Shown: positions 2,450 to 58,152 of the stretch, one piece after another
Layout of the letters: each line of letters opens with the position of its first letter
Numbering within the stretch: the first letter of the stretch is position 1
From: Octopus bimaculoides
Lineage: Eukaryota
Reading direction: 5' to 3'
NCBI RefSeq assembly: GCF_001194135.2
Contig: NC_068993.1
Location: forward strand, 28,299,444-28,363,443
Length of the DNA stretch: 64,000 nucleotides
The notes under the pieces: model-generated
Told to the model about the DNA's origin: nothing
The model's database searches: none
Seen by the model: only the letters and a program-made list of their open reading frames with translations
Translations under genes and position numbers: made by a program

Positions 2450-3990
2450 GCCTGGATCATAACCATCCCTTGAATTATAACATATATATAATTTTGTGCA
2501 TTTCAGCCCAAAGGCTGTGCCCATGTTGGGGCACAGCCAGCAGATTTATTCAGTTTGACATTGTCTATTTCTAGCATGTAATGTTGAAATCCTTTCTTCT
2601 GAAGGATTTAGGTATGAGCAGGCAATTCACCAACATCAGTGACCTTGATGTCAGAATCATCACAAATGCTAGAAAGTGTCTTGATTCATGACCATTCTTA
2701 CAGAGTTAAGAAAGGTGACTCACAGTTCAATGTACCTATGGAAGCTATGAAGGCACCAAATTCACTGATCTCATTGAGTTATCTTGGATAACTTTTGGAA
2801 GCACATGCACCAGCCTGGAAATCTCAAACTATATGAATAGTCATGTTATGGACAAGTTCAGGAAGGACTTCGTAACAATCTTCAAAGAATTCAGTCTAAC
2901 CATAACAGTTTCTACCAACTTGACAAAGGCTGACTTCCTGGCCATAACCCTAGACCTGGTAACTGATAAGTACTACCCATAAAGGAAACTGTAAAAGCTC
3001 TCCCTGTAATCAGAAACTTATCTGGAATTAGCAAAACAATCTCTAAATTTCCTGCAGACTGGGATCTTCAACAAGGCTCCACTTAATTACAACAAAGAAT
3101 TAGTGAGGAGTGGACTCACCAAGACGTTAACATATAGAGAAGTCTCACCCACCTCTGCCTCCAAAGATAACCAGAGAAAGAAATAAAATATGGCTAAAAC
3201 CTACTTTTAACCTTGAAATTTCCACCAACATAGCTTGGAGTTTCCTGTTGTTGACCAAGAAGCATTTCCCATGCTCTTCAACTTTTACAATGCTGAGGTT
3301 AGCTACTCTGTTTCGACAACATTGCATGGCACAAAAGATGCAAACACACCCATATACTCCCCTAACCTATAACTACCAGAACCCTAATAATTACCCTCTG
3401 GGTGGATCCTGTCCTTCAAGAGCTGTGGTCTACAGTAACACAAGATACGGATATGACAGACGACTTCAAGGGAAGGTACACACAGCATATGCACTCCCTC
3501 AGTTGTAGGGATAGGGAAAATTCTAACTTCCTGTTATGCTTTATCCGGAGACTTTGCAACCATTGGAACAACCACCTCAACATTGAATGGAACATTACTG
3601 ATAGGCCTCCGCCCTATTCACCCAGAACTCACAATTGCCAGCTGTGCCTCCATGAAAGACTGCATATTTTCTATCAACAGGAAGAATGAGCTATCATATT
3701 GTTGCCACCATATGTACATTATACAGGTAAACTTCGAGCAGCTAATAATCCGGATAGACCATCATAAATCTGACTACCTCATACACAGGAGTAAGATACT
3801 CACCCACCTGTATAAACAAGCTTACCCAAGTAGATCATTCAGTTGCAATGTAACTACATGTACTGTTGGCAATTTCTTCTCCTTCTTTGGATTTTCCCAT
3901 CTCCTTTCTGATGAAGAGCTATGCTCGAAACGTTAAATTCTCTCCTTTCACCAAACTAATATACTTTTTCACATCTGTCATTTTTCTTTT
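2450..3990 (+). mobile_element. Decayed Penelope-like retroelement (RT remnant + GIY-YIG endonuclease)
   Basis: ORF 3402-3689 FKGRYTQH...NIEWNITDRPPPYSPRTHNCQLCLHERLHI matches the Penelope endonuclease C-terminus; terminal ctgatgaagagc...ctcgaaacgtt motif at about 3908. Confidence 0.7.
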
Positions 3991-6199: not shown

Positions 6200-6830
6200 C
6201 TTCTGCGTTCAGACCACCATGCCCGACAAGTTAGGGTCAATGAATGAACCTATAAAACTTTACATTGCATACAGCTGAATCAAACTGTTATTAAATATAT
6301 ATATATATATATATATAAAAAGTCCAACAAACCTTCATACATAGGGCAGTAGTGAAACAACAGCCTGTCCTTTCAGCAGCTGCACTAGAGCCTTAGTTAA
6401 TGGCTATTACCACTGGCAAAATGACCAGGTGCTCAAAGCTGATTTGGAGGTGATGTCAATAACCAAGTAAATACCATCCTAGGAAAGAGGCCATCACTTT
6501 ACTCAGAGGTAAAAAGTATTCCAATTCACTGAAACATCAACAACCATCATACTTACTTTCAACAGCCCCAGACTGGCAGCTGAGAGTGGATCATGTGGAA
6601 CAGTTATAGCTCCCAGACCACATCATACCAACACTCTGCCCAGAAACAATTGTGTTCTCAAATTCCCTCAAACATGAGATGGTGTGGGAACTGTGTTTTG
6701 AGAGGAACACAAGGATGAAGCATGCCAAATATCGGGAGCTGGTAGTGCAGGGCTTGAAAGCATATTGCAAGGCAACAGAAGTGGGCCAATAGCGGGTGGT
6801 CATTCTACAAAGCTCTGAGAGGGCTTGGAG
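6200..6830 (+). mobile_element. Fragment of a non-LTR element with restriction-like endonuclease (R2/NeSL-type C-terminus)
   Basis: Degenerate ALVNGYYHWQNDQVL, PDWQLRVD, PD..., ELC..E..RMKHAKYREL segments. Confidence 0.45.
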
Positions 6831-9055: not shown

Positions 9056-10048
9056 CTACAAAAGAAAATAAAAGAAAAACAAAAACAATTGGAGAATACT
9101 GAAATTTTGTTAAGAAAATTGTCATTTCATTAAAATTGGTATGTTAATAGAGTCCAAATGTCCATTAACATAAAGTTTCACAAGTAGTCATGGTAACGAT
9201 TAAAACACACTGACAGATACTACTGAACAATTACATTGTAGCCATTCATTCAGAATGAGAACTGATTCTTCATTTAGATAAAAAATTATCATTATAATAT
9301 ATTTCATCATTATTTACAAAATTTATCCACTCCCATATCTCATTATGATTGATATTTTCTAAGGCTTCAAACATCAATGATGACCATAACTGGTCAATAT
9401 ATCATCTCTCCAATTTCCCACCACTGAACTTGAACAAACTGGGCTCAGCTGCCATTTGACAATAAGTTCCTTTGACAGATATCAACTTTTTCACCTTGCA
9501 CGATGGAGAGCTTTACTCTCAACCACTTCAAACCACCAATGTAACTTCCCTAGCTCTACCATGCACTCCCACCAGAAGAGACACTAACTGCAAGCTACAT
9601 ACAGGCAAGTTGTCAAAGAAAGCAGTAACTCGATACAAGGTAGAGGTGACTTGTTAAACCTACTACAAACTATCTAACTAGTGTTAGTGGCATAAAATGT
9701 ACCCAGTCCAGGCTATCAAGTAGTTTGAGATCATCCAGCATCAGAGGTGACTCATCTCATCTACACTAGCATGGAAAAGGCAAACTTAAAATGCTTATAG
9801 TATATAATACTATTAAGAAATAAAACAAAGCTGAATGTAATAATATATGTATGCATGTTTTACATGCCTGTGGTGACCATGGAATCATTCCTTTTCAATA
9901 CACATTTAGAGACAAAAAAAAATCTCTTAAAAATTTCTATTCTATTAAAAAAATAGATGTTAATATAATCCAAATATATAGAAGACTATTTTTGTATCTG
10001 GTCTGCACAATTCTTTATGTGAATTCATAGGTTGAAACAAATTTTGTT

Positions 10049-12794
10049 GTCTGGTCAACAAAAAAAAATTTTTTGAAATGGTGTTGAGACACCAAACATC
10101 TTTTTTTAGCTAATTTGAGGGTGCTGAATCTGAAAATGACCTTACTTTTTCTTGGTTAGCTAGTTTTTGCTGTACAGAAATGCCTCATTTTTGGAGAAAA
10201 AAGCATTTTTTGCATTTGTTTTCTGTATATTTGATATTGATCAATGGCAATATTTTTTAAAGTAAAATTGTAGAAACCTCTCAATTCATATTTAAACCAA
10301 CAAATATTGGTCTGCTTATTGAGAAATACTACTTTTGCAATAACAATCAGACCCTAAGTCTTTAAAAATAACACAATTGAATATACCAAGACCAACAAGT
10401 ATTTTCATCAAATCGTTAAATAAACTAACAGCAGAAATAAAACCTTCGTGAACATAAGAACTATGGTAAAAATTTTCTCTTTCTTGATTGCCATATTCAA
10501 TGTTATTTAAGTCCCTTTTGATACTCCAGCAGTAGTCAGCTATCATTTGATTGTCTCACCGTCTCTGGTAGCGCTCTTCCATTTTGGTATCCTGATGGAT
10601 ATCTTTCTCCTTGCTCATCACTCACATCGCCACAATTATCCAGAAATTTATCTAGATGGCTATGTAAAAAAATGAACCTTAATACTCATATTAGCGCCTA
10701 TGTCCTGAAGACTTTTCAACAGCTTTTCATCACGTCAACAAATGATGTCCAAACACGTAATTCCAAGTCATTCATTGAATTAAATTCATCATCCTTAGTA
10801 AGTTTCCTGATATCAGGACCACCAAACACTCCTGCTTTGAGTTTTTCAGTGCTAAGTCCTGGAAACGATTTACATATAGACTCAAAACATTTACTTTCTT
10901 TGTTGAGTGATTTTACATACTGTTTCATTAATCCCAATTTGATATGCAAAGGAGGGAACTAGCGCTGCACTAATAACACTCTTTTCACTGGCCTTCAACT
11001 CTCTTTCCTTTTCCAATGCCCCTCTTTTGCTCTACTCTCCCACATACACAAAAAATATGGGAAGTTCGTGTAGCCACTTTGTTGACCAAGCAGGAAATTT
11101 ACCATTTTCAAATCAACACACAACACCCATTTATGTTTGGTATAGTCAATCTGTTCCAGAACCTGCTTGATGGCATCATGTTTTTTTTTCAGTGTTGTTG
11201 TATGACCTGTAGGTATTGGCGCATACATGTTGGTATTATGGAGCAAAACACATTTTGAACTATCAATGAACAATCTCCATTTATTAGGATCATATTTGTG
11301 GACGCTTAGTCAAAGAACGCTCTCAATGTCATTGCAATGAACAAGATCCATGTTCTCATTAAAGATTGGTACAAATTCGGCATCCCTATTTTGATAGAAT
11401 GTTACCTTTGTGCCTTTTGCTAACATGTATTTTTCATTGAGCCTAGAGGCCAAAAGTTCTGCTGATTCTTTGCTTAGATTTAAGTCTCGAACCAAATCAT
11501 TCAGCTCATTTTGGTTAAACGGCTCTGGCACGGTTTCGGGAACATAGTCAGGATCCTTTTCTCTGTATCGCTCATTTACATCAGTATCAGACATGTCACT
11601 TTCAACAAGTTTCAACAAATTTTTATGAAAAACTGGGATTGGCAAATCATCTGAATGCAGTACTGGCTGAATAGCGGAATGAAGACTGGGATAGTCGATA
11701 GAACTGCGTTTCTTTTGGTTCAGTCCCACAACACTGACTGAGCAGAAGTAACATTTGTCAGAGTGGTTCTTTGGCTCACGTCAGATCATAGGAACAGCGA
11801 ATCTCAGCGATTTTCGGGTACCTGGAGTCCACTGTCTCATGTGTTCCAAACATGTCTGGCAAACAATGTGAAGGGCCCATGATTTGTCCTGACCACCAAG
11901 CTCGATGTAAAAGTAAGCACGATAGGCTTTCTTGTAAAAGTTAGATATCGGGTTTACTGTTGGCTTTTGGTGTGAACTCGCCGCATATATAGCAAAATAA
12001 GTTGGGATCATTTTTGCATTTTCTCGTTGAAGCCATGTTATTTGATGTCTACCTCTATGATTAAAAAATAACACAAGTTGGTTGAGCATTTACATTACAC
12101 TTTGCATGTTCACATTTAGCTAATTTGATCTTTCCTAATGTCCCATTGAAAGACTCATAAAACTGCCAATAGCAAGAGATGGAAAGAGTCTTTACGCTGA
12201 TTCTACTTTGTATCTTTGTAATCCCGCATGGAGGGCAGATGTTATGGTGAAACCATTTTCAAGATGTTCAAATGTCTTTAGTTGGAGTTTTTTTTTTCCA
12301 ACTGTGAAAACAAAAGCTCTTAATGTGCTTGGTTTTCTTCCATATTGAAAGGAAGATGGGATAAATTTATGAATATCAAACAAAAGATTTTAGGGTTTCA
12401 TTTTTTTGATGTCACCTTAATTATCAGGTTTACTAGTCTATTACTGAAAAAGTTTATCAGTTAATTAAAATTTTGGCAATAAATTGGAAAAATTCTGTAC
12501 TTCTATTTTAAAAGTTTCGACTCAAAAACACTTTTTTCTTAAAAAATTATTTCAGGTGGCTGATGTAAATTGCTCAGCCTACTTGAAAATTCATGGGTTT
12601 CTACTACCTTTTTGAACTAAATTTTGCGATCAGCCAAGATCGTAAATTGATCTTTATTCCAAAAATGAACAATTTCAGTACAGCAAAAACAGTAGCTAAC
12701 CATGAAAAACTAAGGTCATTTTCAGAATCAGGACCATCAAATTAACTAAAAAATGTGTTTTGTTTCTTGGCACCAAAAATTATGTTGACCAGTG
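10049..12794 (-). mobile_element. Chapaev3-like (CMC) DNA transposon, near full length, frameshifted
   Basis: Minus-strand end begins taa|CACTGGTCAAC; imperfect ~150-bp subterminal inverted repeats (10100-10180 vs 12675-12760); fragments LGGQDKSWALHIVCQTC, YPSLHSAIQPVLHS, CVDLKMVNFLLGQQSGYT, HIKLGLMKQYVK, KLKAGVFGGPDIRKL. Confidence 0.75.
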
Positions 12795-12832
12795 TTATTA
12801 ACACATGCACTGATTCAGTTCCACTCCTTTAT

Positions 12833-13189
12833 TATCAGGTCATCCCATAAGTTCTGTCTGAATTTTGAATAAAGAAAACAAGCGATCAAATGTTATATTT
12901 AATTGAAATTTAATCATCAATGTACTTTCCCTGATTATCTATGACTTCCTTCCATCTATTTACGAGCTTTTTAATCCCATCAATGTAAAATTCTTTTGGT
13001 TTCAAAGCGAAGAACTCTGAAATGTCAGTTTCGACCTCCTCCTGGCTTGTGAAAATTATGTCCCCCAAATGATTCTGTAAACTATGAAACAAATGGTAAC
13101 TTTGTTTCATAAACATTCTAAAATACTATTAAATTTCATTCAATTTTAAAAAAGGTAAAATCGGACAGAACTTATGGGATGACCTGATA
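12833..13189 (-). mobile_element. Internally deleted mariner (MITE-like, ~355 bp)
   Basis: Perfect TIR tcaggtcatcccataagttctgtc at both ends with TA duplications; retains only the transposase C-terminus (ORF 12910-13116). Confidence 0.9.
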
Positions 13190-13620
13190 TTAGTCAAATG
13201 GTTAAATATCCAGCTAACTCGATTGATTGTTTAATTTTGTTAAACAATAAGTGATTTGTTTTGTTTGTCAAAGCTCTTTCGTTGCTACTTGCAACTTTGT
13301 TGTGTGCGCGTGTGTATGCATACTTCTGCTTCCTTGTGTGTGCATGCTTAAGTGTATCTACGCATGAGTTTGTGTATATGCATGAGTGCCTATATATGTT
13401 TTTGTGTGTGTGCATGTCTGTACTACCTATATACCTACCTTCCTTCATACATACATACCTTATTTATCTACCTATTAACTTGCCTATCTTCCTACCTATC
13501 TAGCTACCTACATAACTGACTAAGTAACTAACAATCTATATAACTGACCTAACCATGTAAAACCCATCTACTTACCTATCTACCTACCTATTTACCTACT
13601 TCACAAATGTACCTATGTGC
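13190..13620. repeat. TG/TACC/TATC-rich microsatellite composite; related oppositely oriented copy at about 15100-15540
   Basis: Shared core ttgtcaaagctctttc and tacttctgcttc..tgtgcgtgtg; simple repeats. Confidence 0.55.
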
Positions 13621-14050: not shown

Positions 14051-15110
14051 AACCCCATGACTACCAAGGAAACCAAGAGGAGCATGATGGCAAGCATCCA
14101 GCATATAGCTAATTCCATCCGGCAAAGTATCAAGGTAACTATAGATTACCCAACTAGGCACCCTAACAATAGACATTCGATCCTTGATACTGAACTTTGG
14201 TTAGAGATAAACAACAGAGTACAGCTCCTCCACTATTACATGAAATCCATAGCTTCTAAATATGTTGTTCACAAGAACTCAGCTTTGTCACACGATATGA
14301 AAATTAGCATACTAATTTAGACTTAGAGTAATGAATAATGTATCCCCCCTATGTGAACCCAGTGAAACAAGGAGACATGTACAGAACTTCATGCACAACA
14401 TGCAATTATCTGGATATGACCAGAAAGATAGGATTCGAGTAAGAAATTAGACGACATCATACGTAATGATGCCTGTGTAAAGATTGGAATACACAGAGGA
14501 TTTGTGACAAAGCAAAGAGAGTGAACACATGGTACAGGGCTGATAAATATCAAGGAGTGATGTTTGTGGAGGCCACACCTCATGAAGAATTAGCCCGCAG
14601 ACTTAGGAAAGCTCTGAAGGACACCAAACTCAACATTAAGGTCATTGAGAAGCCAAGGAGCTCCATCAGATCACAATTATGTAGGATGTACAGCTTCGAA
14701 AATATCACATGCACTAATGAGAACTGTGTAGTATGAAAGTTTAACTCCAATATTACTTGTAAAACTAAGAATGTAGTCTACAGAATAAGGTGCATGGAAG
14801 AAGTTTGTAAGGACAGAAACACAGCGGAGCACCAGAGAGAGTATAATGACAAGAAACAGTTGTCCATGCTCTATCAACATGCCAAAGACCAACATGGCAG
14901 CACACTGGGCCAAAATGACATCCACATTTTGTCCAAACACCCGAAGGCCCTATCACTAAGACAAATACAAGAGTACACCCTCATAAATGAAACATTACTC
15001 ATACGAAATAAGAAATACACAAAGGTAGGGATACCCCCAATGCCACAGATACCACCCACACAGTATACATACATAGGTACACTCATAAGTAGGCAGTCAA
15101 GCAGGTAGGC
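14050..15110 (+). mobile_element. Decayed Penelope-like element (GIY-YIG region)
   Basis: GVMFVEATPHEELARRLRK..., CKTKNVVYRIRC, EHQREY...SMLYQHAKDQHG. Confidence 0.7.
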
Positions 15111-19155: not shown

Positions 19156-19425
19156 TTTTTCAACTTCAAGATCCCCCTTCAAAGGTTTTTTAGGTCTACC
19201 ATCAACCGGCTCCACTTTTTCTTCAGAACCTGAAGCATTATCACCTTCTTCTTCTTCTTCTTCTTCTTCTTGACCACCTTCATCTGCAAGTTTATCAGAA
19301 TTGTCTTTCTTCTTGTCAGAATCATCTTTCATCTCCTCAGAATCACCTTTCACCTTGCCAGAATCATCACTAATTTTGTCATCAGGTGATGGTGCATCGG
19401 TTTTCTTCCTCTCTGCAGTTTCATC
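19156..19425 (-). CDS. CANX: Calnexin exon, acidic cytosolic tail: DETAERKKTDAPSPDDK...EEEEEEEE...GDLEVEK
   Basis: 270 nt, phase 0/0; gcttcaag|GAT ... AAA|gtaagt; KKTDAP motif; overlaps ORF 19147-19353. Confidence 0.92.
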
Positions 19426-20629: not shown

Positions 20630-21860
20630 GTAACACCATGGCTGAAAAGTTCATAAGCTGACTATGAAGGAGTGATGCTAGAGTTGTGAAATCTTGCATG
20701 CATTAATTTCAACTTTCCTTATTAGTAACTTCATTGTTTCTTTCTTTCCAGGTAAACTGACATCTGATTGTTCAAAGAACACTTCAAAAGTAACTTGTAG
20801 CAACTTCTCTTGAAAATGGACAAAAATTGGCATCGTGGTGTTGTCAAGTACCTGCAGAAAAAGGCTTTAACTCCCAAGGATTTTCATGTTGACATGGTTG
20901 CTACATTAGGGGATGATACTCCACCTATATCAACAGTGGAAAAGTGGACAGCAGAATTTAGGAGGGGAATGGAGTCTTGATGATGACTCAACATTTGGAC
21001 ATCCTGCAACTGCCACTATCAAGGAAAACATTGATTGTGTTCACCACATACTGATGAATGACAGGTGACTGACTATAAATCAAATAGCCAATGCTATTAG
21101 CATATCACGTGAGAGAGTTGAGAATATTCTGCACAATGAAATTGGAAGGATGAAAGTTTCTGCTTGGTGGGTACCATGGCTTCAGATACTTGATCAAAAG
21201 TGACCAAGCTGATCTTGTTATGGGAAAATCTGACATTGTTTCAGGCAGAGCCAGATGATTTCCTTAAATGTTTCCCAACCCAGGATGAGAGTTGGGCTCA
21301 TCACTTTGAGCTAGAGACAAAGAGACAATCCATAGTGTGGAAATACTCTTCTTCACCTGTTCTAAAGACAGTCAAATTAATTTCATCTGCAGATAGTATG
21401 AAGGCCTCAGTCAATAAACACAATGCCTTTTGCAGCCCCAAAAATTATCTTCAAAAGGATCATGCCAACTTGCTGAGGCAGTTACAAAAGGTATCAAGAC
21501 CAAATGCCCAGGAAAACCAACAAAAGCTGACTTGTTTCCTCAGGACAATGCTCCAGTACACAAGTTCTTGGTTTCAATGGCTGCTGTACATAATTGTTGC
21601 TTAGAACTGGTTGATTTGGCCTCATCTGACTATCATATCTTCCCAAACATAAGAAAACATTTGGCTGGGAACCAGTATTCCAGCAATGATGATATCATAT
21701 CTGCTGTTGATGACTTTTTTAACCAACAGGATGAAAGTTTCTTTACCAATGGGATCCAAGCACTAATGGAAGAAGTGTGTGGACTGCAAAGGGGACTATA
21801 TTGAAAAATAAACTTCACTTGGTCACATTTCATGAGTATTTTGGTCAGCTAATCCTCAAA
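20630..21860 (+). mobile_element. Mariner transposon, decayed
   Basis: TQDESWAHHFELETKRQS, QDNAPVH, DLASSDYHIFPNIRKHLAGNQY...FFTNGIQAL. Confidence 0.85.
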
Positions 21861-22243
21861 TAACTATCTGATCAGATACATTTTGGCAACCTGAAACTTT
21901 GAAGATAAAAGCCATGACAACAAGGACTGGTACCATTTCTGTAACTGGCATTATCTCCTTAACTGTACGACTTGACTAGCCAAAAGTTGGTACTACTTCT
22001 ATATTGCAGATTCCGAATATACAAAAAGTTATAACTTTTCTATACACATGTAATTTAAGTACAACTAATAATGTTGTCTGTTGTTTACTGTCTGTTGTGA
22101 ATTAATGTAACTTGGCCCTGAAGAGGTGCAAGACTTCATGTTTTTATCTCAGACAAGAGTGAGTCGGGATCTTGCATTGAAATGTGCATAGGTTATTAAA
22201 CAAGCTTTATTAAGGATTGCGTTATGGCTCTTAGTTAAATTGA

Positions 22244-22315
22244 TATATATATATATATATATGTATNNNNNNNNNNNNNNNNNNNNNNNNNNNNNNNNNN
22301 NNNNNNNNNNNNNNN

Positions 22316-22347
<32 letters not shown>

Positions 22348-22698
22348 AGAATTTAAAAAAAAGCTAAAGACGAAGACAGGTGCTGGAGACAACAAACAGA
22401 TGTACTAGTATAACGCTTGGGAAGTGAAAAAGTCTTTCAATGTTTTGAGCCTACGTTCTTCCACAGAAAGAAACTAGTAGAGAAAAAAAAGAATGTGTAG
22501 TGGCTAGCGATCTATCATGGTGATACACATATATATACGTATATACACATACATAACTACATATATGCATACATATATATATACATGCATACATATATAT
22601 ATACATGCATACATACATATATACATACATACATATATATATATACATACATATATATATACATACATACATATATATATACATACATACATATATAT

Positions 22699-22729
<31 letters not shown>

Positions 22730-23074
22730 CATACATACATACATACATATACATACACATACATACATACATATACATACANNNNNNNNNNNNNNNNNNN
22801 NNNNNNNNNNNNNNNNNNNNNNNNNNNNNNNNNNNNNNNNNNNNNNNNNNNNNNNNNNNNNNNNNNNNNNNNNNNNNNNNNNNNNNNNNNNNNNNNNNNN
22901 NNNNNNNNNNNNNNNNNNNNNNNNNNNNNNNNNNNNNNNNNNNNNNNNNNNNNNNNNNNNNNNNNNNNNNNNNNNNNNNNNNNNNNNNNNNNNNNNNNNN
23001 NNNNNNNNNNNNNNNNNNNNNNNNNNNNNNNNNNNNNNNNNNNNNNNNNNNNTATATATGTATATACATATATG

Positions 23075-23320: not shown

Positions 23321-25864
23321 TATCTATATAGCTGAGTTTGTGAGTGTGTTGCATCTATAGAAATCCACGCCTTACAAGATAGCAATCTGGGAGTCGCACC
23401 GATGGATTCCTCATGGTTGAAAATGCCCGGAATCGGCTATTTGTCTTTTTTTTTCGTTGCTTCCTAACACGTGAAATTTTGCATTAAAAATAATTTTAAA
23501 CCATAAATTCTAACAAGTTTCAAGTCGCCATTATTTGCAAACATGAGTTCAGTCCCCTTCTAGCGACGGTGCAAAGACAGAGAGCAACAGAGATAACAGA
23601 TATGTTAACTTTAACTTTATTTCTATTTTAATATAAACCTTTAAATGAGTTGGGTGTTTTTTCTCAAGTATCTAATGAATTATTTGATATAGTGGTGTTG
23701 TTTTCATCTACCTACTTTACATCATAATAGTTACTTAATTTTTAATTTATATGTATATGTGAGATAGTAACGATTACATCGTAATATTTGTTTACTTTTC
23801 ACTTTATTGATTAAATCCGTTCTTTCTTTTGATATTATTTTTAATATTGTATCTGAACCCCATTACTAAGTTAATTTATTATAATTTTTCTTAAACTTTG
23901 ATAGCTGCAATCTGAATGTAACCTAATTTATTTCACTTATTATCTATAGTTTATATTCTCTAATTTATCTTGTATATAATAAACGTGAAGTTGTGGATCT
24001 GTGTGAAGTCTTTTTAAAAGTTTATAGAAATCCACATTTTCCACTTTTTCGTAAATTTTTTTACATCAATGAAATTTTCTCGATGTGGACTTTCCAATGC
24101 AGTAATTAGATTTTTTAAAATTCCGTTTACTTTGTGATTTAAGGGAGGTTTGGCTGTTATTTCTAGCAACTTTTATATTTCTTCCCTTCTACCTGTAACA
24201 GCGTTCTTATACACATATATCACGCGCTCAACATAAAATATAGAATAAGAGTGAGAGAGAGAGAGAGAGAGAGAAAGAGAAAGTGATACATACAAAGTCT
24301 TCTTTCTTTTTCCTCTCTCCCATTTAATAGTTTTCTTGTATCCCTCTACCTCTAACATATTTTTCATAACATAGAAGCGTAAAAACACACACACAACCAC
24401 ACATACGTGATCTGTGACAACAACATACACATAAACATTATAGATATAAGATTTCTGCCCAATCTGATAGAATTCTGGCAAAACTGTGTAGCAACAGATC
24501 GCCAGCAATTGCTTCATCACAAATTGCCATCCTAGTTCCTGCTAAAAGGGATTACCCTGCTATGTATAATCAGGGCAGCGCAAAAAGTTGTTTTGCACAA
24601 GCATTTCTATAGCCAATTAGACGGATGAAATTTACGTATGCTTAATAATGTTACGCAAAACAGCCTTCAGACTTTCCCTATTAATTTCACTGTCTTTTGA
24701 ATTATGAACATATTTACATCATAAGGGTTTATTCGTTGTAAGGCTTCCTTTTTTAGTTGATTTTCACCTAGCAAGACTTATCGTAGATGGCGTAATAAGT
24801 CACACCCGGACAACGTCAGGTTATGCTGCTAGTATATATATAAAGGTTGGCATCAGATCTGCTGTATTGTTTATGCCATTGAATGCATTCTTGTTTACTC
24901 CTATCTGTCTCAAACATTATTCCCTATCTCTATCACTGTGAATGTCATACAACACCTGCATTAATGTCTCCCTATCACTTTCCCCTACCACCCTGCTTGC
25001 ACCATGATACTTATAATCTTGCTTCTTTCACCCTCTTGATTTTCATGCTTTTCCTATTCACATTCTTGGTCAATGTTTGCATTGAATTTTAAGTCAAGAG
25101 TACTTTTTAGTCTTGCAGGGAACAAAGTAACCTCTGTAGTATTAGTATCATAATAAGTATACTCTGAATTGTATAGAAAGGGCATCCAATAACAGAAACT
25201 ATGCCATAATGGAATATACAAACCAAGACAAATTCTTCACACTTATCTAAGGAGGACTGGCTTGATAAGCACTGAAAATAGCATGTACATGGTGTTATAT
25301 GTCAGCTGGTAATTTAAGTTTAACCACAAACTCAGCTCAAGATAGAGTTCACTACCAGTTTGTAGTACTTGTATACAATGTGTTATATATCACAACTAGA
25401 GCATTAGTAGTCACAAGCTTCTGACAGGCCAACCACTGCTCACTCTATTTCTGAAAGAATAAGTAGTTAAGGAGTATCTATAAACTTGATGTTGAACAAA
25501 TATTTGAAAGGGCTTCATTTGTAAAGCACCAGTTTCTCCAACCAGTATAGAAAGACACACATAATGATAGTTTCTCAGCACTGACAAGATATTAATCAAC
25601 CTGCAGCTATAGTAGAAGACATCTGCCCTAAGTTGCCATGAAGTTGGATCAGTTGCAAAATTCTTAACATTGCAGCCATACCTGTGCACAAAAACAATAT
25701 AATCACTACATCTAAAAGTGGGGTACTTAAACTGCAGGTTTTGAATGAACAAATATATCAAAGAGAGGCAAGTGGGAGAAAAAGCAATGTGAAAGCTATA
25801 CTTGAGCAACTACTGCAACTAGTATAGAAAATACTGGACAATGCAGCCACAACACATAAACTAC

Positions 25865-26011
25865 CTCTTGATTCCCTCCTTTAGAGATAATGTAGAGAGA
25901 CAGTAGTATGATAGGAATGATAATAATCATTCCATATGTAACAATTAACCAGGGATTGTCTTCAGCAGCAAATGAAAGTTTATTCATCAACATCATGAAA
26001 TAGCTACTTTC
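25865..26011 (-). CDS. CANX: Candidate alternative (paralogous) TM exon B: ESSYFMMLMNKLSFAAEDNPWLIVTYGMIIIIPIILLSLYIISKGGNQE
   Basis: 147 nt, phase 0/0, stop-free; acceptor ttttgttttctgtatacag|GAA, donor CAAGAG|gtagtt; PWL...P...Y spacing identical to exon A. Confidence 0.75.
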
Positions 26012-26084
26012 CTGTATACAGAAAACAAAACCAAATCTTTTTTTTAAAATGCGACAAAACATGAATCATTGAAACAATGATAAG

Positions 26085-26246
26085 TAGAATGCTGAAAGGG
26101 AAATATCTTGCCATTGGGAAGGGGAGGAGTTAGTCACAAATATTTAAGCAATGTCCAGAAATGGGTTCAGTATCCAGACATATTCTCCAAGAGCAGTTAG
26201 TTACATTGCACAGAAAAACGGGGGCTTTAAACAGAGCCACACTTTT
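26085..26246. repeat. ~162-bp direct repeat, copy 1 (intron between TM exons A and B)
   Basis: Near-identical to 27018-27182: 2 substitutions plus a G-run difference. Confidence 0.95.
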
Positions 26247-26348
26247 TTCATGTACACACAAAGGCTTTAGTATTTTAGAAGATAAAGAAAAAACTGGATA
26301 TGCAGCTGCATGCAATGCAAACCAGCTATTTTCAAAGGGAAAGCTTAC

Positions 26349-26477
26349 CTTTGCTGAGCTGCCTACACAGCAATAGGCAATAACAAGTACAATAGGAAGC
26401 AAAACAACAACAATGAATACGGCCCATAGCCAAGGCCGTTCATTAGTCACATCAAGAACAGCTTGCACTACACTTTT
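26349..26477 (-). CDS. CANX: Calnexin canonical TM exon A: KSVVQAVLDVTNERPWLWAVFIVVVLLPIVLVIAYCCVGSSAK
   Basis: 129 nt, phase 0/0; ctgtttcag|AAA ... AAG|gtaagc; ERPWLW, hydrophobic helix, mid-TM Pro and juxtamembrane CC as in vertebrate calnexin. Confidence 0.95.
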
Positions 26478-27017: not shown

Positions 27018-27182
27018 TAGAATGCTGAAAGGGAAATATCTTGACATTGGGAAGGGGAGGAGTTAGTCACAAATATTTAAGCAATGTCCAGAAATGGGTT
27101 CAGTATCCAGACATATTCTCCAAGAGCAGTTAGTTATATTGCACAGAAAAGGGGGGGGGGCTTTAAACAGAGCCACACTTTT
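27018..27182. repeat. ~165-bp direct repeat, copy 2 (intron upstream of TM exon A)
   Basis: Near-identical to 26085-26246; bordered by (TA)n on both sides. Confidence 0.95.
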
Positions 27183-27269
27183 ATTCACTGCACTATATAT
27201 ATATATATAGTGCAGTTAAGTAAACTGTCGTCTAAATTACATGAAAATGAAAACAACAATGACATCACA

Positions 27270-28077
27270 TTTTAACAGATATATTTACCAAAGTTGCATA
27301 AAAATATATTCAAATACTAAAGAGTAAATTTATTCAATAAAATCCTCATTGGTTTCAATCATGGCCTCCAGACGACTTCGGAATCTCCCGCAACTCTTCT
27401 GGATGGTCTCCTTGTTTAAGTTGATGAATGCTGCCATAATCCTTGCTTTCAGTTCATCTTTGGTGTTACAAAGAGTTTTGTTGGTCTCTTGCTCAACTGC
27501 GCCTCACACATAAAAATCAAGGGAGTTGCAGTGTGGGGAGTTAGGTGGTCAGATGTTAAGGGTGATATGGTCACAGAAATTATCTGAAAACCATGACTGG
27601 GTTCTCCTGCTTATGTGACATGATGCAGAGTCCTGCTGCCAAACAGAGGGTCTTCCAGCAGCCACCCTCTTGACCCAGGGTAGCACTACTTCTTCCAGGC
27701 ACTTGATGTAAGCCTCCATGTTGAGACTGAGGCCGTGTGGGAAGACGAATGGAGGCATAACGTCACCATCACTAGAGACCACCCCAAACACCATGATGTT
27801 GACTGGATGTTTGATTTTCATCACACTTGGTCCTCAGATTGACTCCCAAATACTTTGAAATGTTTGTATTGGACCTTCTGGCACAAATGCCAAGCAGTAC
27901 AGTATGTCGTTACCAAATTTTGGGCAGAATGAATTGTGTCATGGTGCTATTTTTCTCACAGATGGTGTCCAACTGACCCTACTATACTGTGTAGTCAACA
28001 AAATCAAAAACAAACAATGCACATGCGTGAAATTAAAAATATAAAATGGCGATGATTTACCCAGTGCACCCTTATAT
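27270..28077 (-). mobile_element. Tc1/mariner-superfamily transposon remnant
   Basis: ORF 27549-27824 HPVNIMVFGVVSSDG...WQQDSASCH; NSPHCNSLDFYVW follows; terminal tataagggtgcactgggtaaatc. Confidence 0.8.
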
Positions 28078-29403: not shown

Positions 29404-29580
29404 GAAAACGAAAGACTAACGACAAAATATATACTTTTAGACATTCAGTCTATTTCTGCCATTCCACTGTGCTTAATTACTATTACTACTTGTAGTAAGT
29501 TCTAACTTTGGAACAAACCCACAAATTTAGAGGTAAGAGCATGTCAACTTAAATCTACTCAATGTCAACACAGACACTAT

Positions 29581-30099
29581 NNNNNNNNNNNNNNNNNNNN
29601 NNNNNNNNNNNNNNNNNNNNNNNNNNNNNNNNNNNNNNNNNNNNNNNNNNNNNNNNNNNNNNNNNNNNNNNNNNNNNNNNNNNNNNNNNNNNNNNNNNNN
29701 NNNNNNNNNNNNNNNNNNNNNNNNNNNNNNNNNNNNNNNNNNNNNNNNNNNNNNNNNNNNNNNNNNNNNNNNNNNNNNNNNNNNNNNNNNNNNNNNNNNN
29801 NNNNNNNNNNNNNNNNNNNNNNNNNNNNNNNNNNNNNNNNNNNNNNNNNNNNNNNNNNNNNNNNNNNNNNNNNNNNNNNNNNNNNNNNNNNNNNNNNNNN
29901 NNNNNNNNNNNNNNNNNNNNNNNNNNNNNNNNNNNNNNNNNNNNNNNNNNNNNNNNNNNNNNNNNNNNNNNNNNNNNNNNNNNNNNNNNNNNNNNNNNNN
30001 NNNNNNNNNNNNNNNNNNNNNNNNNNNNNNNNNNNNNNNNNNNNNNNNNNNNNNNNNNNNNNNNNNNNNNNNNNNNNNNNNNNNNNNNNNNNNNNNNNN
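29581..30099. other. Assembly gap
   Basis: N run. Confidence 1.
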
Positions 30100-30279
30100 A
30101 TCTACTTTTAAAAACTATCTCTCTCTTGTCTTCTTTTATTGATTTATATTCTTTTCAAAAGTTTTCTGATTTAATATTTGTATTGCTTCAACTATAGTTG
30201 GCATCAGCAATATGTGAGGATGATTTTAAATATTGTAAACAATTTCAAAATAAAATCATTCAGTCTTGTATTTTTTTTG

Positions 30280-32577: not shown

Positions 32578-32724
32578 ACCAGAAATGGAAGATTTTTCCT
32601 GAGCTTGTTTTAGTGCAAACGTATCTTCAGTCCATTTCGTAGTTGTTGCAAGGTTGTCTGTTATAAGAATGTTATCAAACATGATAGATTCAGTCATAGA
32701 CCATAACTCTAATCCAACAGCACC
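32578..32724 (-). CDS. CANX: Calnexin exon: GAVGLELWSMTESIMFDNILITDNLATTTKWTEDTFALKQAQEKSSISG
   Basis: 147 nt, phase 0/0; ttttccag|GGT ... GGT|gtaagt; GLELWSM/FDN motif. Confidence 0.95.
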
Positions 32725-42670: not shown

Positions 42671-43933
42671 TTAGGTTGTCAAGAAAGTTCTTGCAGTTTT
42701 TAACCTTTAAATTCAGATGCACATATCTTTGGCTCAAACAAAACTTTATTAATCGAAATAAACACCATCAGAATCAACGCACTTTTGCCAACGCGAAACA
42801 AGTTTATTTATGCCAGTAGCGTAAAAATCATGCGCTCTGGTGGCGATGAAGTCGCTGAAGGTGTGTTTGGCATTGTCTTTGTTTCTGAAGCATTTCTCAC
42901 GCAGGAAGTTGTCAAGATGCTTGAAAAAGTGGTAATCGGTAGGCAAGAGGTCTGGTGAGTATGGCAGATGAGGCAGTTTCATAGCCCAATTCTTTCAACC
43001 TCTGCAGAGTCAGTTGTGTGACGTGCGGCCGAGTGTTGACGTGGAGAAGAATTGGTCCTTTTCTATTGACCAATGCTGGCTGTTCTTGTCGGAGTTTCTT
43101 ATGCATTTCACCCATTTGCTGACAGTACTTCTCCACTGTAATGGTTTCGCCTGGATTCAAAAAGCTGTGATGGATGAGACTGGCCACAGACCACCAAACA
43201 GTCACCATGACCTTCTTTTGGTGCAACTTTGGCTTCGGGAAGTGCCGTGGAGCTTCGTCGGTGTCCAACCACTGAGCTGAGCGTTGCCAGTTGTCATAAA
43301 GAATCCACTTTTCATCGCAAGTCACAATCTGGTCGAGAAACAGGTTGTTCTTGTTGCGTAAAAGAGAAGACAACACTTTTTGTTGTTCAATTCATGTGGC
43401 ACCCATTTCTCAAGTATTTTTGTTTTTCCAATCTCTTTCAAGTGGTTGGAAATTGTCGTATATGTTAAGTCTAATACAGAAGCAAGCTCCTGAACAGTTG
43501 TGCGTGGATTGGCTTTGACTAAGGCTCTTAGTTTATTGTTGTCAACATCCGATGGCTGACCACTATGCTTATCATCTTCATGACTCTCATCACCGCTATG
43601 AAATTTCTTGAACCACTATTGTGCTGTACATTCATTAGTGGTTCCTGGGCCAAACACATCGTTGATATCGTGAGCTGTTTCAGTAGCTTTTCAGCCTAGC
43701 TTGAACGGAAATAAGAAAATTGTGCGAATTTGCTTTTTGTCCATGTTGTATTCAACATTCCGGAAAAAATGGCCTAATTATTCAAAAAGGAAATGAATAA
43801 CACGATTAGATAGAGTGAAAAATGAGCTTTAAAATTATATATGAAGTCAAAGTGATTTAATGAAAATTAATTTGAAAACTCATCATTTAAAACCAAAATT
43901 AAAAATTCCTTAAGAACTTTCTTGACAACCTAA
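42671..43933 (-). mobile_element. Full-length mariner (1263 bp), inactivated
   Basis: Perfect 22-bp TIRs ttaggttgtcaagaaagttctt with TA flanks; [35 protein letters not shown]; frameshifts, and the second catalytic D appears as V (LLHVN). Confidence 0.93.
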
Positions 43934-51502: not shown

Positions 51503-51572
51503 CTAATTGTATATATATATATATACACACACACACATATATATATGTATTTATATATATATATATATATAT

Positions 51573-51990
51573 NNNNNNNNNNNNNNNNNNNNNNNNNNNN
51601 NNNNNNNNNNNNNNNNNNNNNNNNNNNNNNNNNNNNNNNNNNNNNNNNNNNNNNNNNNNNNNNNNNNNNNNNNNNNNNNNNNNNNNNNNNNNNNNNNNNN
51701 NNNNNNNNNNNNNNNNNNNNNNNNNNNNNNNNNNNNNNNNNNNNNNNNNNNNNNNNNNNNNNNNNNNNNNNNNNNNNNNNNNNNNNNNNNNNNNNNNNNN
51801 NNNNNNNNNNNNNNNNNNNNNNNNNNNNNNNNNNNNNNNNNNNNNNNNNNNNNNNNNNNNNNNNNNNNNNNNNNNNNNNNNNNNNNNNNNNNNNNNNNNN
51901 NNNNNNNNNNNNNNNNNNNNNNNNNNNNNNNNNNNNNNNNNNNNNNNNNNNNNNNNNNNNNNNNNNNNNNNNNNNNNNNNNNNNNNNNNN
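51573..51990. other. Assembly gap flanked by (TA)n
   Basis: N run. Confidence 1.
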
Positions 51991-52220
51991 AAAATGGTGC
52001 ATCTCATGTGCCACCCGCACAAGAACCAGTCCAGGGGCACTGGCAACGATCTTACTTGGCTTGCCGGGTCTTCTCACGCACAGCCCATTTCCAAAGGTCT
52101 CGGTCCGTAGTCATCGCCTCGGTGAGGCCCAATGTACGAAGGTCTTGCCTCACCACCTCAGCCCAGGTCTTCCTGGGCCTACCTCTTCCACGGGTTCCCT
52201 CAACTGTTAGGGTGTGGCAC
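51991..52220 (-). mobile_element. RTE 3' fragment
   Basis: Reverse complement of the GRGRPRKTWAEVVRQDLR segment. Confidence 0.8.
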
Positions 52221-56879: not shown

Positions 56880-58152
56880 TTCATCAATCTAGACACTTCA
56901 CCTGCACCCTGTAACATGAGAGACTGGTAAAAGTATTGAACTCTTGGCATTGGACAAAAAAGTCAGTTGTTACTTATTCTGATGATGGATCTAAAAAAAC
57001 AGGGAGCTGGATCTTTCTCCGTCCAGGAGTTGACCTCTGCGGTTTTTCAGTTGGAGGGCACAGAACTAAAGAGGCTGCACAATATGCACCATATGGCGGT
57101 CAACTGGACGATGTTTTTGGCTAGGAAGGTCGACCCCAATGTCACCAAGGAGAGCGTCCAGAGGATAGTCAGGAACTGTAAGAGGTGCTAATAGATTGAT
57201 CCTATCCAAACACACAAGAACCAGGAAAGACTCAGGCAGAGGAAGAATGGAAGAGGCTAGCCATTGATGACACACTATTGGGGAAAGGTGTACTTTTCAC
57301 TGGTCGACTGTGGAACAGGGCGAATGGCTATATGGAGAGAAATCAGGGCGGAAACTGCTGCCGAGGTCACAGAGGTGCTGAATGTGGTGCATTTGGAAAA
57401 GGGGCCTGTAGACGAGCTATTGATGGATAACTGCAGTTTTTCGCTCAAAGTAGCTGAAAGAGATGCTCGGAAGATGGAGCACAAGACACTTTTTCAGAGC
57501 TGTATGCAGGCCAGGTGGAAACGGGATTGTGGAACAGCCCCACTGTATGATTAAAGCCAAAGCTGAGAGGGGACAAATCTCCCCCATGGAAGCAGTCTTC
57601 TGGTATATGTTGCCCAGGGTAGTGCAAGCCAAAGAGTTGGTCCTGCACAGGGCTGTATTCCGATACAAATAGGGACACCAGAGCGTGGTGCCACAACAGC
57701 AAGAGGTGGAAGGGATTACATCTGTGCAGGTTGGAGATGAAGTGTCGGTGAAGTCTCTGAACACTTGGTGCACAATGCAGTGGGGAAAAGGAAAGGTGAC
57801 CATGATCAGTACTCTGAATAATGTATCAGTGGGTGGAATGCCATGTCATGACCTGGATATTAGAAGGGTGATTAGCTCTTGTAATGATGAAGGGGAGGAG
57901 GAAGGTGGCCCCAAGACCCTACGGAGATCTCCAAGGGAATGTCATCCCCCCAGGTGGATGGATGATTATGAGAGAGAACAGGGGAGATGTGATCTTTAGA
58001 TCAGTGGGGGCATATGGTGGAAGGAAGACTGGAAGCAACAAGGGATGGCGTATCGTCAGCAAGTGAGAAAAGTTTTTCCCTGCATTTTGCTTTTCCTAGG
58101 GATGCAAGCAGTGACAGACGCCAGTTGTGGAGATAGAGAGGTTGTGACAACA
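56880..58152 (+). mobile_element. Gypsy LTR-retrotransposon remnant: integrase, PPT and partial 3' LTR
   Basis: HNMHH...CKRC zinc finger; THYWGKVYFSLVDCG; ELLMDN; GNGIVE; VQVGDEV; purine tract agtgggggc; end TGACAACA at 58152. Confidence 0.8.

Follow-up and report, generated by a model that had tools for sequence, protein, structure and literature searches.

Vertebrate calnexin (CANX) is held in the membrane by a type I anchor that reads ...AAEERPWLW..., with a proline at position 13 of the transmembrane (TM) segment and an aromatic residue a little ahead of the juxtamembrane site. The juxtamembrane di-Cys of mammalian calnexin is reportedly S-palmitoylated by DHHC6, and palmitoylation places the mammalian protein at the translocon or at mitochondria-associated membranes. 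To our knowledge, no vertebrate calnexin has an alternative TM exon. Calmegin (CLGN), a calnexin paralogue of restricted context, is testis-specific. Tandem-duplicated alternative exons are in general a familiar kind of gene feature and alternative TM exons are among them. In Drosophila Dscam1, exons 17.1 and 17.2 are two adjacent homologous TM exons of a type I protein, one of which enters each mRNA, and the choice at exon 17 directs the protein to dendritic or axonal targets. Besides anchoring, the TM helix of mammalian calnexin binds clients inside the membrane (PMC9753464). In the human TM segment, QMIEAAEERPWLWVVYILTVALPVFLVILFCCSGKK, this binding is carried by the Y6/T9/L12 motif, whose mutation makes TM clients bind less well and destabilises rhodopsin (PMC9753464).

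The window analysed here, a stretch of 64,000 nucleotides from Octopus bimaculoides (NC_068993.1), bears a calnexin gene on its minus strand. Using human calnexin as tblastn query, 13 calnexin exons were located within 61532-19156 (-), the matches running in order from 61532 to 26355 with 45-87% identity per exon. Twelve lumenal lectin/P-domain exons at 61532-32578 (-), with up to 87% identity, lie upstream of the TM exons, and homologues found by searching with the flanking exons contain PF00262, which places the gene in the calreticulin family. The features needed for the comparison are given below in window coordinates, with a slash at each splice border:

32578..32724, minus strand: upstream constitutive exon, GAVGLELWSM...EKSSISG, phase 0 end, donor GGT/gtaagt
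26349..26477, minus strand: TM exon A (A-type), 129 nt, 43 codons, phase 0/0, KSVVQAVLDVTNERPWLWAVFIVVVLLPIVLVIAYCCVGSSAK
26012..26348, minus strand: A-B intron, 337 nt, with a SINE-like repeat at 26133-26290 and, at 26012-26040, the polypyrimidine tract and AG that belong to exon B
25865..26011, minus strand: TM exon B (B-type), candidate alternative anchor, 147 nt, 49 codons, phase 0/0, ESSYFMMLMNKLSFAAEDNPWLIVTYGMIIIIPIILLSLYIISKGGNQE
25859..25864, minus strand: donor of exon B, GAG/gtagtt, weaker than the gtaagt-type donors of the gene's other exons
25750..25830, minus strand: conserved intronic block, 35-115 nt downstream of exon B
19156..19425, minus strand: cytosolic-tail exon, 270 nt, phase 0/0, DETAERKKTDAPSPDD...GDLEVEK, starting DETAERKKTD…

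Exon A carries the juxtamembrane di-Cys (...AYCCVGSSAK) between an acceptor ctctgtttcag/ and a strong donor AAG/gtaagc. Exon B has neither a stop nor a cysteine, and its acceptor (ttttgttttctgtatacag/GAA) presents an AG behind a polypyrimidine tract. The two exons are adjacent, homologous, alike in length (129/147 nt), both in phase 0/0 and 337 nt apart. Coordinates, frame, splice sites and spacing of exon B all match those given by an earlier sequence-only reading of this DNA. As all junctions are in phase 0, inclusion of A, of B, of both or of neither keeps the frame. The tail exon has no cysteine near the membrane, and its homologues include the tail exons that follow a B-type exon in two of the sequences described below (L004 and L011).

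Compared with CANX, exon B keeps AAE-D, PWL, Tyr6 and Pro13, and exon A keeps the di-Cys. Unlike the single TM exon of vertebrates, which unites these features, the locus splits them, with CC in A and with AAE and Tyr6 in B, and Thr9 of the human motif is found in neither mollusc exon. The proposed isoform B resembles calmegin in being an additional chaperone of calnexin type that has a TM segment of its own; calmegin, which also has its own tail, is however a whole-gene duplicate of vertebrates, while here the duplication is confined to the TM exon and splicing would decide between the copies. Dscam1 is an unrelated protein, yet its alternative TM exons have the same tandem layout as the candidate pair A/B.

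The homology of exon B to calnexin anchors was evaluated by ungapped BLOSUM62 scoring. Its best score was 54 when compared with exon A and 68 when compared with the TM segment of human calnexin, whereas composition-matched shuffles of exon B scored 20 +/- 4 with a maximum of 41, and 0/3000 reached the observed values. Anchored on PWL, exons A and B are identical at Pro0, Trp1, Leu2, Pro13, Ile14, Leu16 and Tyr20, and 20/43 positions score positive. The register proposed before, in which PWL, Pro +13 and Tyr +20 are kept and CC becomes II, is confirmed. Exon B encodes a hydrophobic span of 22 residues, which, together with the AAEDNPWL start and Pro13, gives it the make-up of a calnexin TM segment; the Kyte-Doolittle maximum over 19 residues reaches 2.49 in isoform B, compared with 3.21 in isoform A. 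What exon B lacks is the juxtamembrane cysteine, with 0 Cys in both related species compared here, as opposed to the YCC of exon A. Judged by these scores, exon B is truly homologous to the TM exon of calnexin. The sequence-only reading had already proposed an exon duplication and a membrane-spanning character, and its remark that AAED-x-PWL stands nearer to vertebrate AAEERPWL than the start of exon A does is correct against the confirmed human segment.

A protein search with exon B in a collection of 5.8 billion sequences yielded one protein, P0001, an ORF of a related species. It lies on three Logan contigs of ~2 kb (L001-L003, from SRR11869385, SRR11869390 and SRR11869394), which align to window positions 26734-25035. 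These contigs represent genomic DNA, since the P0001 ORF runs through the exon B donor into the intron. Differences between the two species were distributed as follows:

Exon A: 2/129 differences, 1.6%, 0 gap columns, both synonymous
Exon B: 3/147 differences, 2.0%, 0 gap columns
Three flanking intron segments: 92/783 differences, 11.7%, 30 gap columns

Exon B differs significantly from the introns (Fisher p = 4.6e-5), and the A-B intron alone presents 10.9% mismatches and 17 gap columns. The related species retains the acceptor AG of exon B with its polypyrimidine tract as well as the donor GT (GTAG), and exon B has usable splice sites in both, its donor being weaker than that of A. The comparison points to purifying selection on exon B in both related species, as had been supposed when it was described as kept under selection. 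All three exon B changes alter the amino acid conservatively (N>S, F>L, I>V), and both exon A changes are synonymous, a contrast that fits a weaker protein-level constraint on B in numbers too small to interpret. The intronic block at 25750..25830 (-) shows 2-3 differences per 50 columns in a sliding window and could possibly act as a splicing-regulatory element. The 40 nt directly after the exon B donor are fast-evolving (9/40 differences).

An exhaustive HMMER search was run with exon B, followed by a search with a profile of both regions. Most HMMER matches were bacterial repeat proteins (SAADNxWxSVTYGNGLFVAV), dismissed as chance resemblance, and the sole useful match of the exhaustive search was a gene model of the clam Mya arenaria (P0029). 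In M. arenaria WAQ99047.1, an A-type TM exon (…DVTQDRPWLWAVFLVVVVLPVVLLVAYCCISKDK) is directly followed by a second TM exon (GGVWSTLTGAAEERPWLYAVYVVVLLLPIVLLSICLCPRSGPI). The profile search led to many genomic ORFs that encode a highly uniform B-type exon, with the consensus …AA(E/D)(E/D)RPWLWA(V/L)YVVVLLLP(I/V)(I/L)L(L/I)SICLCP(R/K)SGPIK, as well as to spliced sequences and to a Tegillarca granosa model (KUTeg_023945) with A plus part of B. Two genomic contigs present the whole order of exons:

L006: upstream exon 3713-3874, A-type exon ~6200-6330, B-type exon from 9658, tail exon 16578
L012: upstream exon 122-269, A-type exon 707-832, B-type exon 1330-1464, tail exon 2292-2446

The B-types of these molluscs (WAQ99047.1, KUTeg_023945 and the Logan/ENA contigs L004-L006 and L011-L013) are like exon B in their position after A and before the tail, in their phase and in AAE(E/D)xPWL, Tyr6, Pro13 and LLS. 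They are 43-45 codons long, very uniform (…YVVVLLLPI(V/I)LLSICLCPRSGPIK) and keep two cysteines; exon B of O. bimaculoides, in contrast, has 49 codons, is much diverged (…YGMIIIIPIILLSLYIISKGGNQE) and is cysteine-free, and it stands far further from them than they do from one another. Across molluscs, A and B differ at four places: in the lumenal juxtamembrane segment (D(V/A)TxxRPWLW in A versus AAEExPWLW in B), at TM position 6 (Phe in A-types, Leu in the annelid ones, versus Tyr in every B-type), in a Ser at position 18 of B, and in the cytosolic juxtamembrane segment (AYCC(M/V)… in A versus ICLCPRSGPIK in B). In PWL-anchored comparisons, exon B scored 66-89 (11-16/35 identities) against eight B-type exons and 44-59 (7-11/35 identities) against nine A-type exons, among them the adjacent exon A, and it has AAE, Tyr6 and Leu-Leu-Ser at 16-18 in common with the B-types. 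Exon A scored 143-161 (23-29/35 identities) against A-types of bivalves and an annelid, to which it stands close.

The most economical reading of these likenesses is that exon B would be the octopod-lineage copy of an ancient B-type TM exon, born in one tandem duplication that predates the split of cephalopods, bivalves and gastropods. The old duplication supposed in the sequence-only reading accords with the higher scores against B-types and with the A-then-B order in L006 and L012. Some of the shared B characters (AAEE, LLS) are perhaps ancestral, AAEER being present also in human and in the single-exon species of L007, so that much of the weight for orthology is carried by the position of exon B and by its lack of special likeness to the neighbouring exon A. 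Concerning annelids, a siboglinid-like locus (L010; ENA ERZ26696836, 10010-11113) bears an A-type exon nearly identical to that of the window (KSVVQAVLDATHERPWLWAV…), and no B-type exon lies between it and the tail exon 810 nt downstream; the B-type is hence not universal in lophotrochozoans. P0056 (L007-L009) was considered as a spliced B isoform and rejected, being a genomic contig of a compact genome; the one TM exon in L007 is B-like, still contains CC and forms a single exon with the upstream one, so that L007 is no case of alternative exons. P0002 and P0043, whose tail resembles that of the window, were considered as possible squid calnexin and dropped, as these genomic ORFs span several exon boundaries of the gene. 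In L006 (ENA ERZ25073280, ctg33534), positions 9630-13237 hold 21 tandem copies of the B-type exon with a period of 172 bp and 93% matches, nearly all open, ~40 nt apart and located between the A-type and the tail exon. This array could be an exon-born satellite, an assembly artefact or a multi-exon alternative cluster.

Splicing of a B-type exon in place of A was found in cDNA. Two Logan contigs, L004 and L005 (SRR11939895 and SRR11939896), are intron-free and cover most of the calnexin coding sequence with the stop codon and the 3' UTR, and their sole TM exon is B-type. Placed on the genomic contig L012, the cDNA joins 269 to 1330 and 1464 to 2292 with canonical AG/GT at each border, and skips the A-type exon at 707-832, whose cag/ and /gtaagg sites are intact; no 25-mer of that exon occurs in the L004/L005 cDNA. 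A B-only, A-skipped calnexin mRNA exists in one other mollusc. The cDNA and L012 are 95-97% identical, as close relatives or variants and not necessarily one individual would be. The region of exon A skipping in the cDNA is L004:732-1167, and near L004:695-700, ~180 nt upstream of the TM exon, both cDNA contigs have a frameshift, with T5 where T6 is needed. A B-type exon is joined to a tail also in L011, from a run (SRR3401656) that was traced to an apple-snail meta-transcriptome (PMC11662614). Joins of A to the tail that look like mRNA occur in P0051, P0083 and P0046, and the A-only and B-only forms come from different species. For O. bimaculoides itself, queries with exon B and its flanking exons in the 5.8-billion protein collection returned no calnexin transcript of either isoform, nor a transcript with exon B from any cephalopod, only genomic ORFs, so that the missing B transcript is uninformative.

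Regarding the way in which one exon might exclude the other, the reading frame does not enforce exclusivity, as both exons are multiples of three, and the 337 nt of the A-B intron exclude steric hindrance. No conserved docking/selector RNA pairing was found between A and B, where inverted repeats are short and at chance level. The best of them pairs the exon A donor region at 26341-26356 (CAGCAAAG/GTAAGCTT) with the interior of exon B at 25966-25981 (13/16 complementary), and since the sole substitution in that arm breaks a pair in the related species, this pairing is probably due to chance.

Taken together, the sequence comparisons and the cDNA make it probable (about 0.7) that exon B is a functional alternative coding exon and an ancient tandem duplicate of the TM exon. 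The main competing reading takes it for a relic pseudo-exon, the remnant of an ancestral B-type that is no longer spliced and drifts. Its strong divergence from the otherwise very uniform B-types, with loss of both cysteines, would suit such a relic, as would the weaker donor gtagtt and the fact that three of three substitutions are non-synonymous. We find a relic unlikely nonetheless, because a frame of 49 codons is still open in DNA of 35% G+C, hydrophobic length, PWL, Tyr+6, Pro+13 and LLS are retained, the splice signals are intact in both species, and 2.0% divergence without an indel stands against 11.7% plus indels in the adjacent introns. Chance, by which an AT-rich open frame would mimic a TM helix, has in its favour that hydrophobic open frames are common in AT-rich DNA, with many of at least 45 codons in the window. 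It is effectively refuted by shuffles of matched composition that never attain the observed score, and position, phase, splice signals, conservation and orthologues all run contrary to it.

Conservation for a non-coding reason, with the block serving as a splicing enhancer, silencer or decoy exon that governs exon A or the long downstream intron, would account for equal conservation at all codon positions (3 non-synonymous and 0 synonymous changes), for the further conserved intronic block just downstream and for the 13/16 complementarity that links the donor region of exon A to a stretch within exon B. Against this, the single substitution in the complementary arm breaks the pair without compensation, the orthologous exons are coding in other molluscs, and frame, TM hydrophobicity and family motifs are kept far deeper than a comparison of two species reaches, which is unexpected for an RNA element; the reading appears to us improbable. 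Still harder to sustain is a cassette exon included together with A, giving a calnexin of two TM segments with a lumenal tail, as in the Mya arenaria model. Both exons are multiples of three and A+B stays in frame, and WAQ99047.1 and the Tegillarca granosa model do have A followed by B or part of B; these two models are however automatic gene predictions, and in the one real cDNA spanning both junctions, B is present and A is absent. Moreover, A+B would put the acidic tail and the C-terminal basic motif in the lumen, so that the topology that defines calnexin would be lost.

With exon B read as an alternative coding exon, the calnexin of O. bimaculoides probably comes in two membrane-anchor versions, and A and B are probably mutually exclusive. 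The pre-mRNA would be spliced either from the upstream exon to A and the tail or from the upstream exon to B and the tail, giving two type I membrane chaperones that would have the lectin and P domains and the cytosolic tail in common and would be set apart by the TM helix and by the juxtamembrane residues on its lumenal and cytosolic sides. In isoform A, TM position 6 would be Phe and Y-C-C would form an acylation site; in isoform B, position 6 would be Tyr, matching the Tyr of the Y-T-L motif by which vertebrate calnexin binds clients within the membrane. Having no cysteine here, isoform B would not be S-acylatable near the membrane. The isoforms may differ in client recognition, partner binding or acylation.

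The sequence-only reading had seen in the pair a palmitoylation switch. In part this stands, exon B being cysteine-free here and in the related species; as a general account it does not, since the B-types of bivalves and snails keep Cys +20 and +22. Palmitoylation on or off cannot be the conserved reason for the pair when these B-types retain two juxtamembrane cysteines (S-I-C-L-C-P), and the cysteine-free state of B was seen in this lineage only. As Tyr6 belongs to the human client motif, a swap of intramembrane client or partner recognition may be at least as plausible a purpose as acylation. We tentatively propose that an ancient exclusive TM pair swaps the client-binding face (Phe6/Tyr6) and the acylation segment on an unchanged lectin domain, and that the cysteine-free B of octopods would yield a non-palmitoylatable calnexin set by splicing and sorted differently among the translocon, mitochondria-associated membranes and other ER subdomains.

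A literature search brought up no published alternative or mutually exclusive TM exon of calnexin, and the statement of the sequence-only reading that no description was known agrees with this. A paper dedicated to scallop calnexin gives one TM domain and mentions no isoforms. Public records already include B-type sequences, some of them in faulty models that place the two exons in tandem (WAQ99047.1). The tandem A+B models WAQ99047.1 and KUTeg_023945 are probably annotation artefacts of an alternative exon pair, and an annotation problem can be flagged in at least two public mollusc gene models that string both TM exons into one protein. If true, a swap of anchors through splicing would amount to an experiment of evolution on intramembrane client binding and on palmitoylation-dependent sorting. 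It would offer isoform pairs with the same lectin domain, Phe6 versus Tyr6 helices and YCC versus CxC or no cysteine, making the A/B pairs testable material for intramembrane chaperoning and for sorting among ER subdomains.

Elsewhere in the window, transposon-like open frames at 27552-27833 (-), 21418-21801 (+), 10539-11780 (-), 14470-15105 (+) and 57454-57996 (+) had no Pfam match. Runs of N (1257 in total) at ~22200-23050, ~29580-30100 and ~51570-52000, beside TA/CA-type microsatellites, are assembly gaps in calnexin introns. Two direct SINE-like repeat copies of ~160-190 nt, at 26133-26290 and 27018-27207, occupy the introns on either side of exon A, and the copy between A and B is found in the related species as well. 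Finally, a mariner-type transposase fragment (Pfam PF01359, E = 1e-27) is established within a calnexin intron at 42915-43391 (-).
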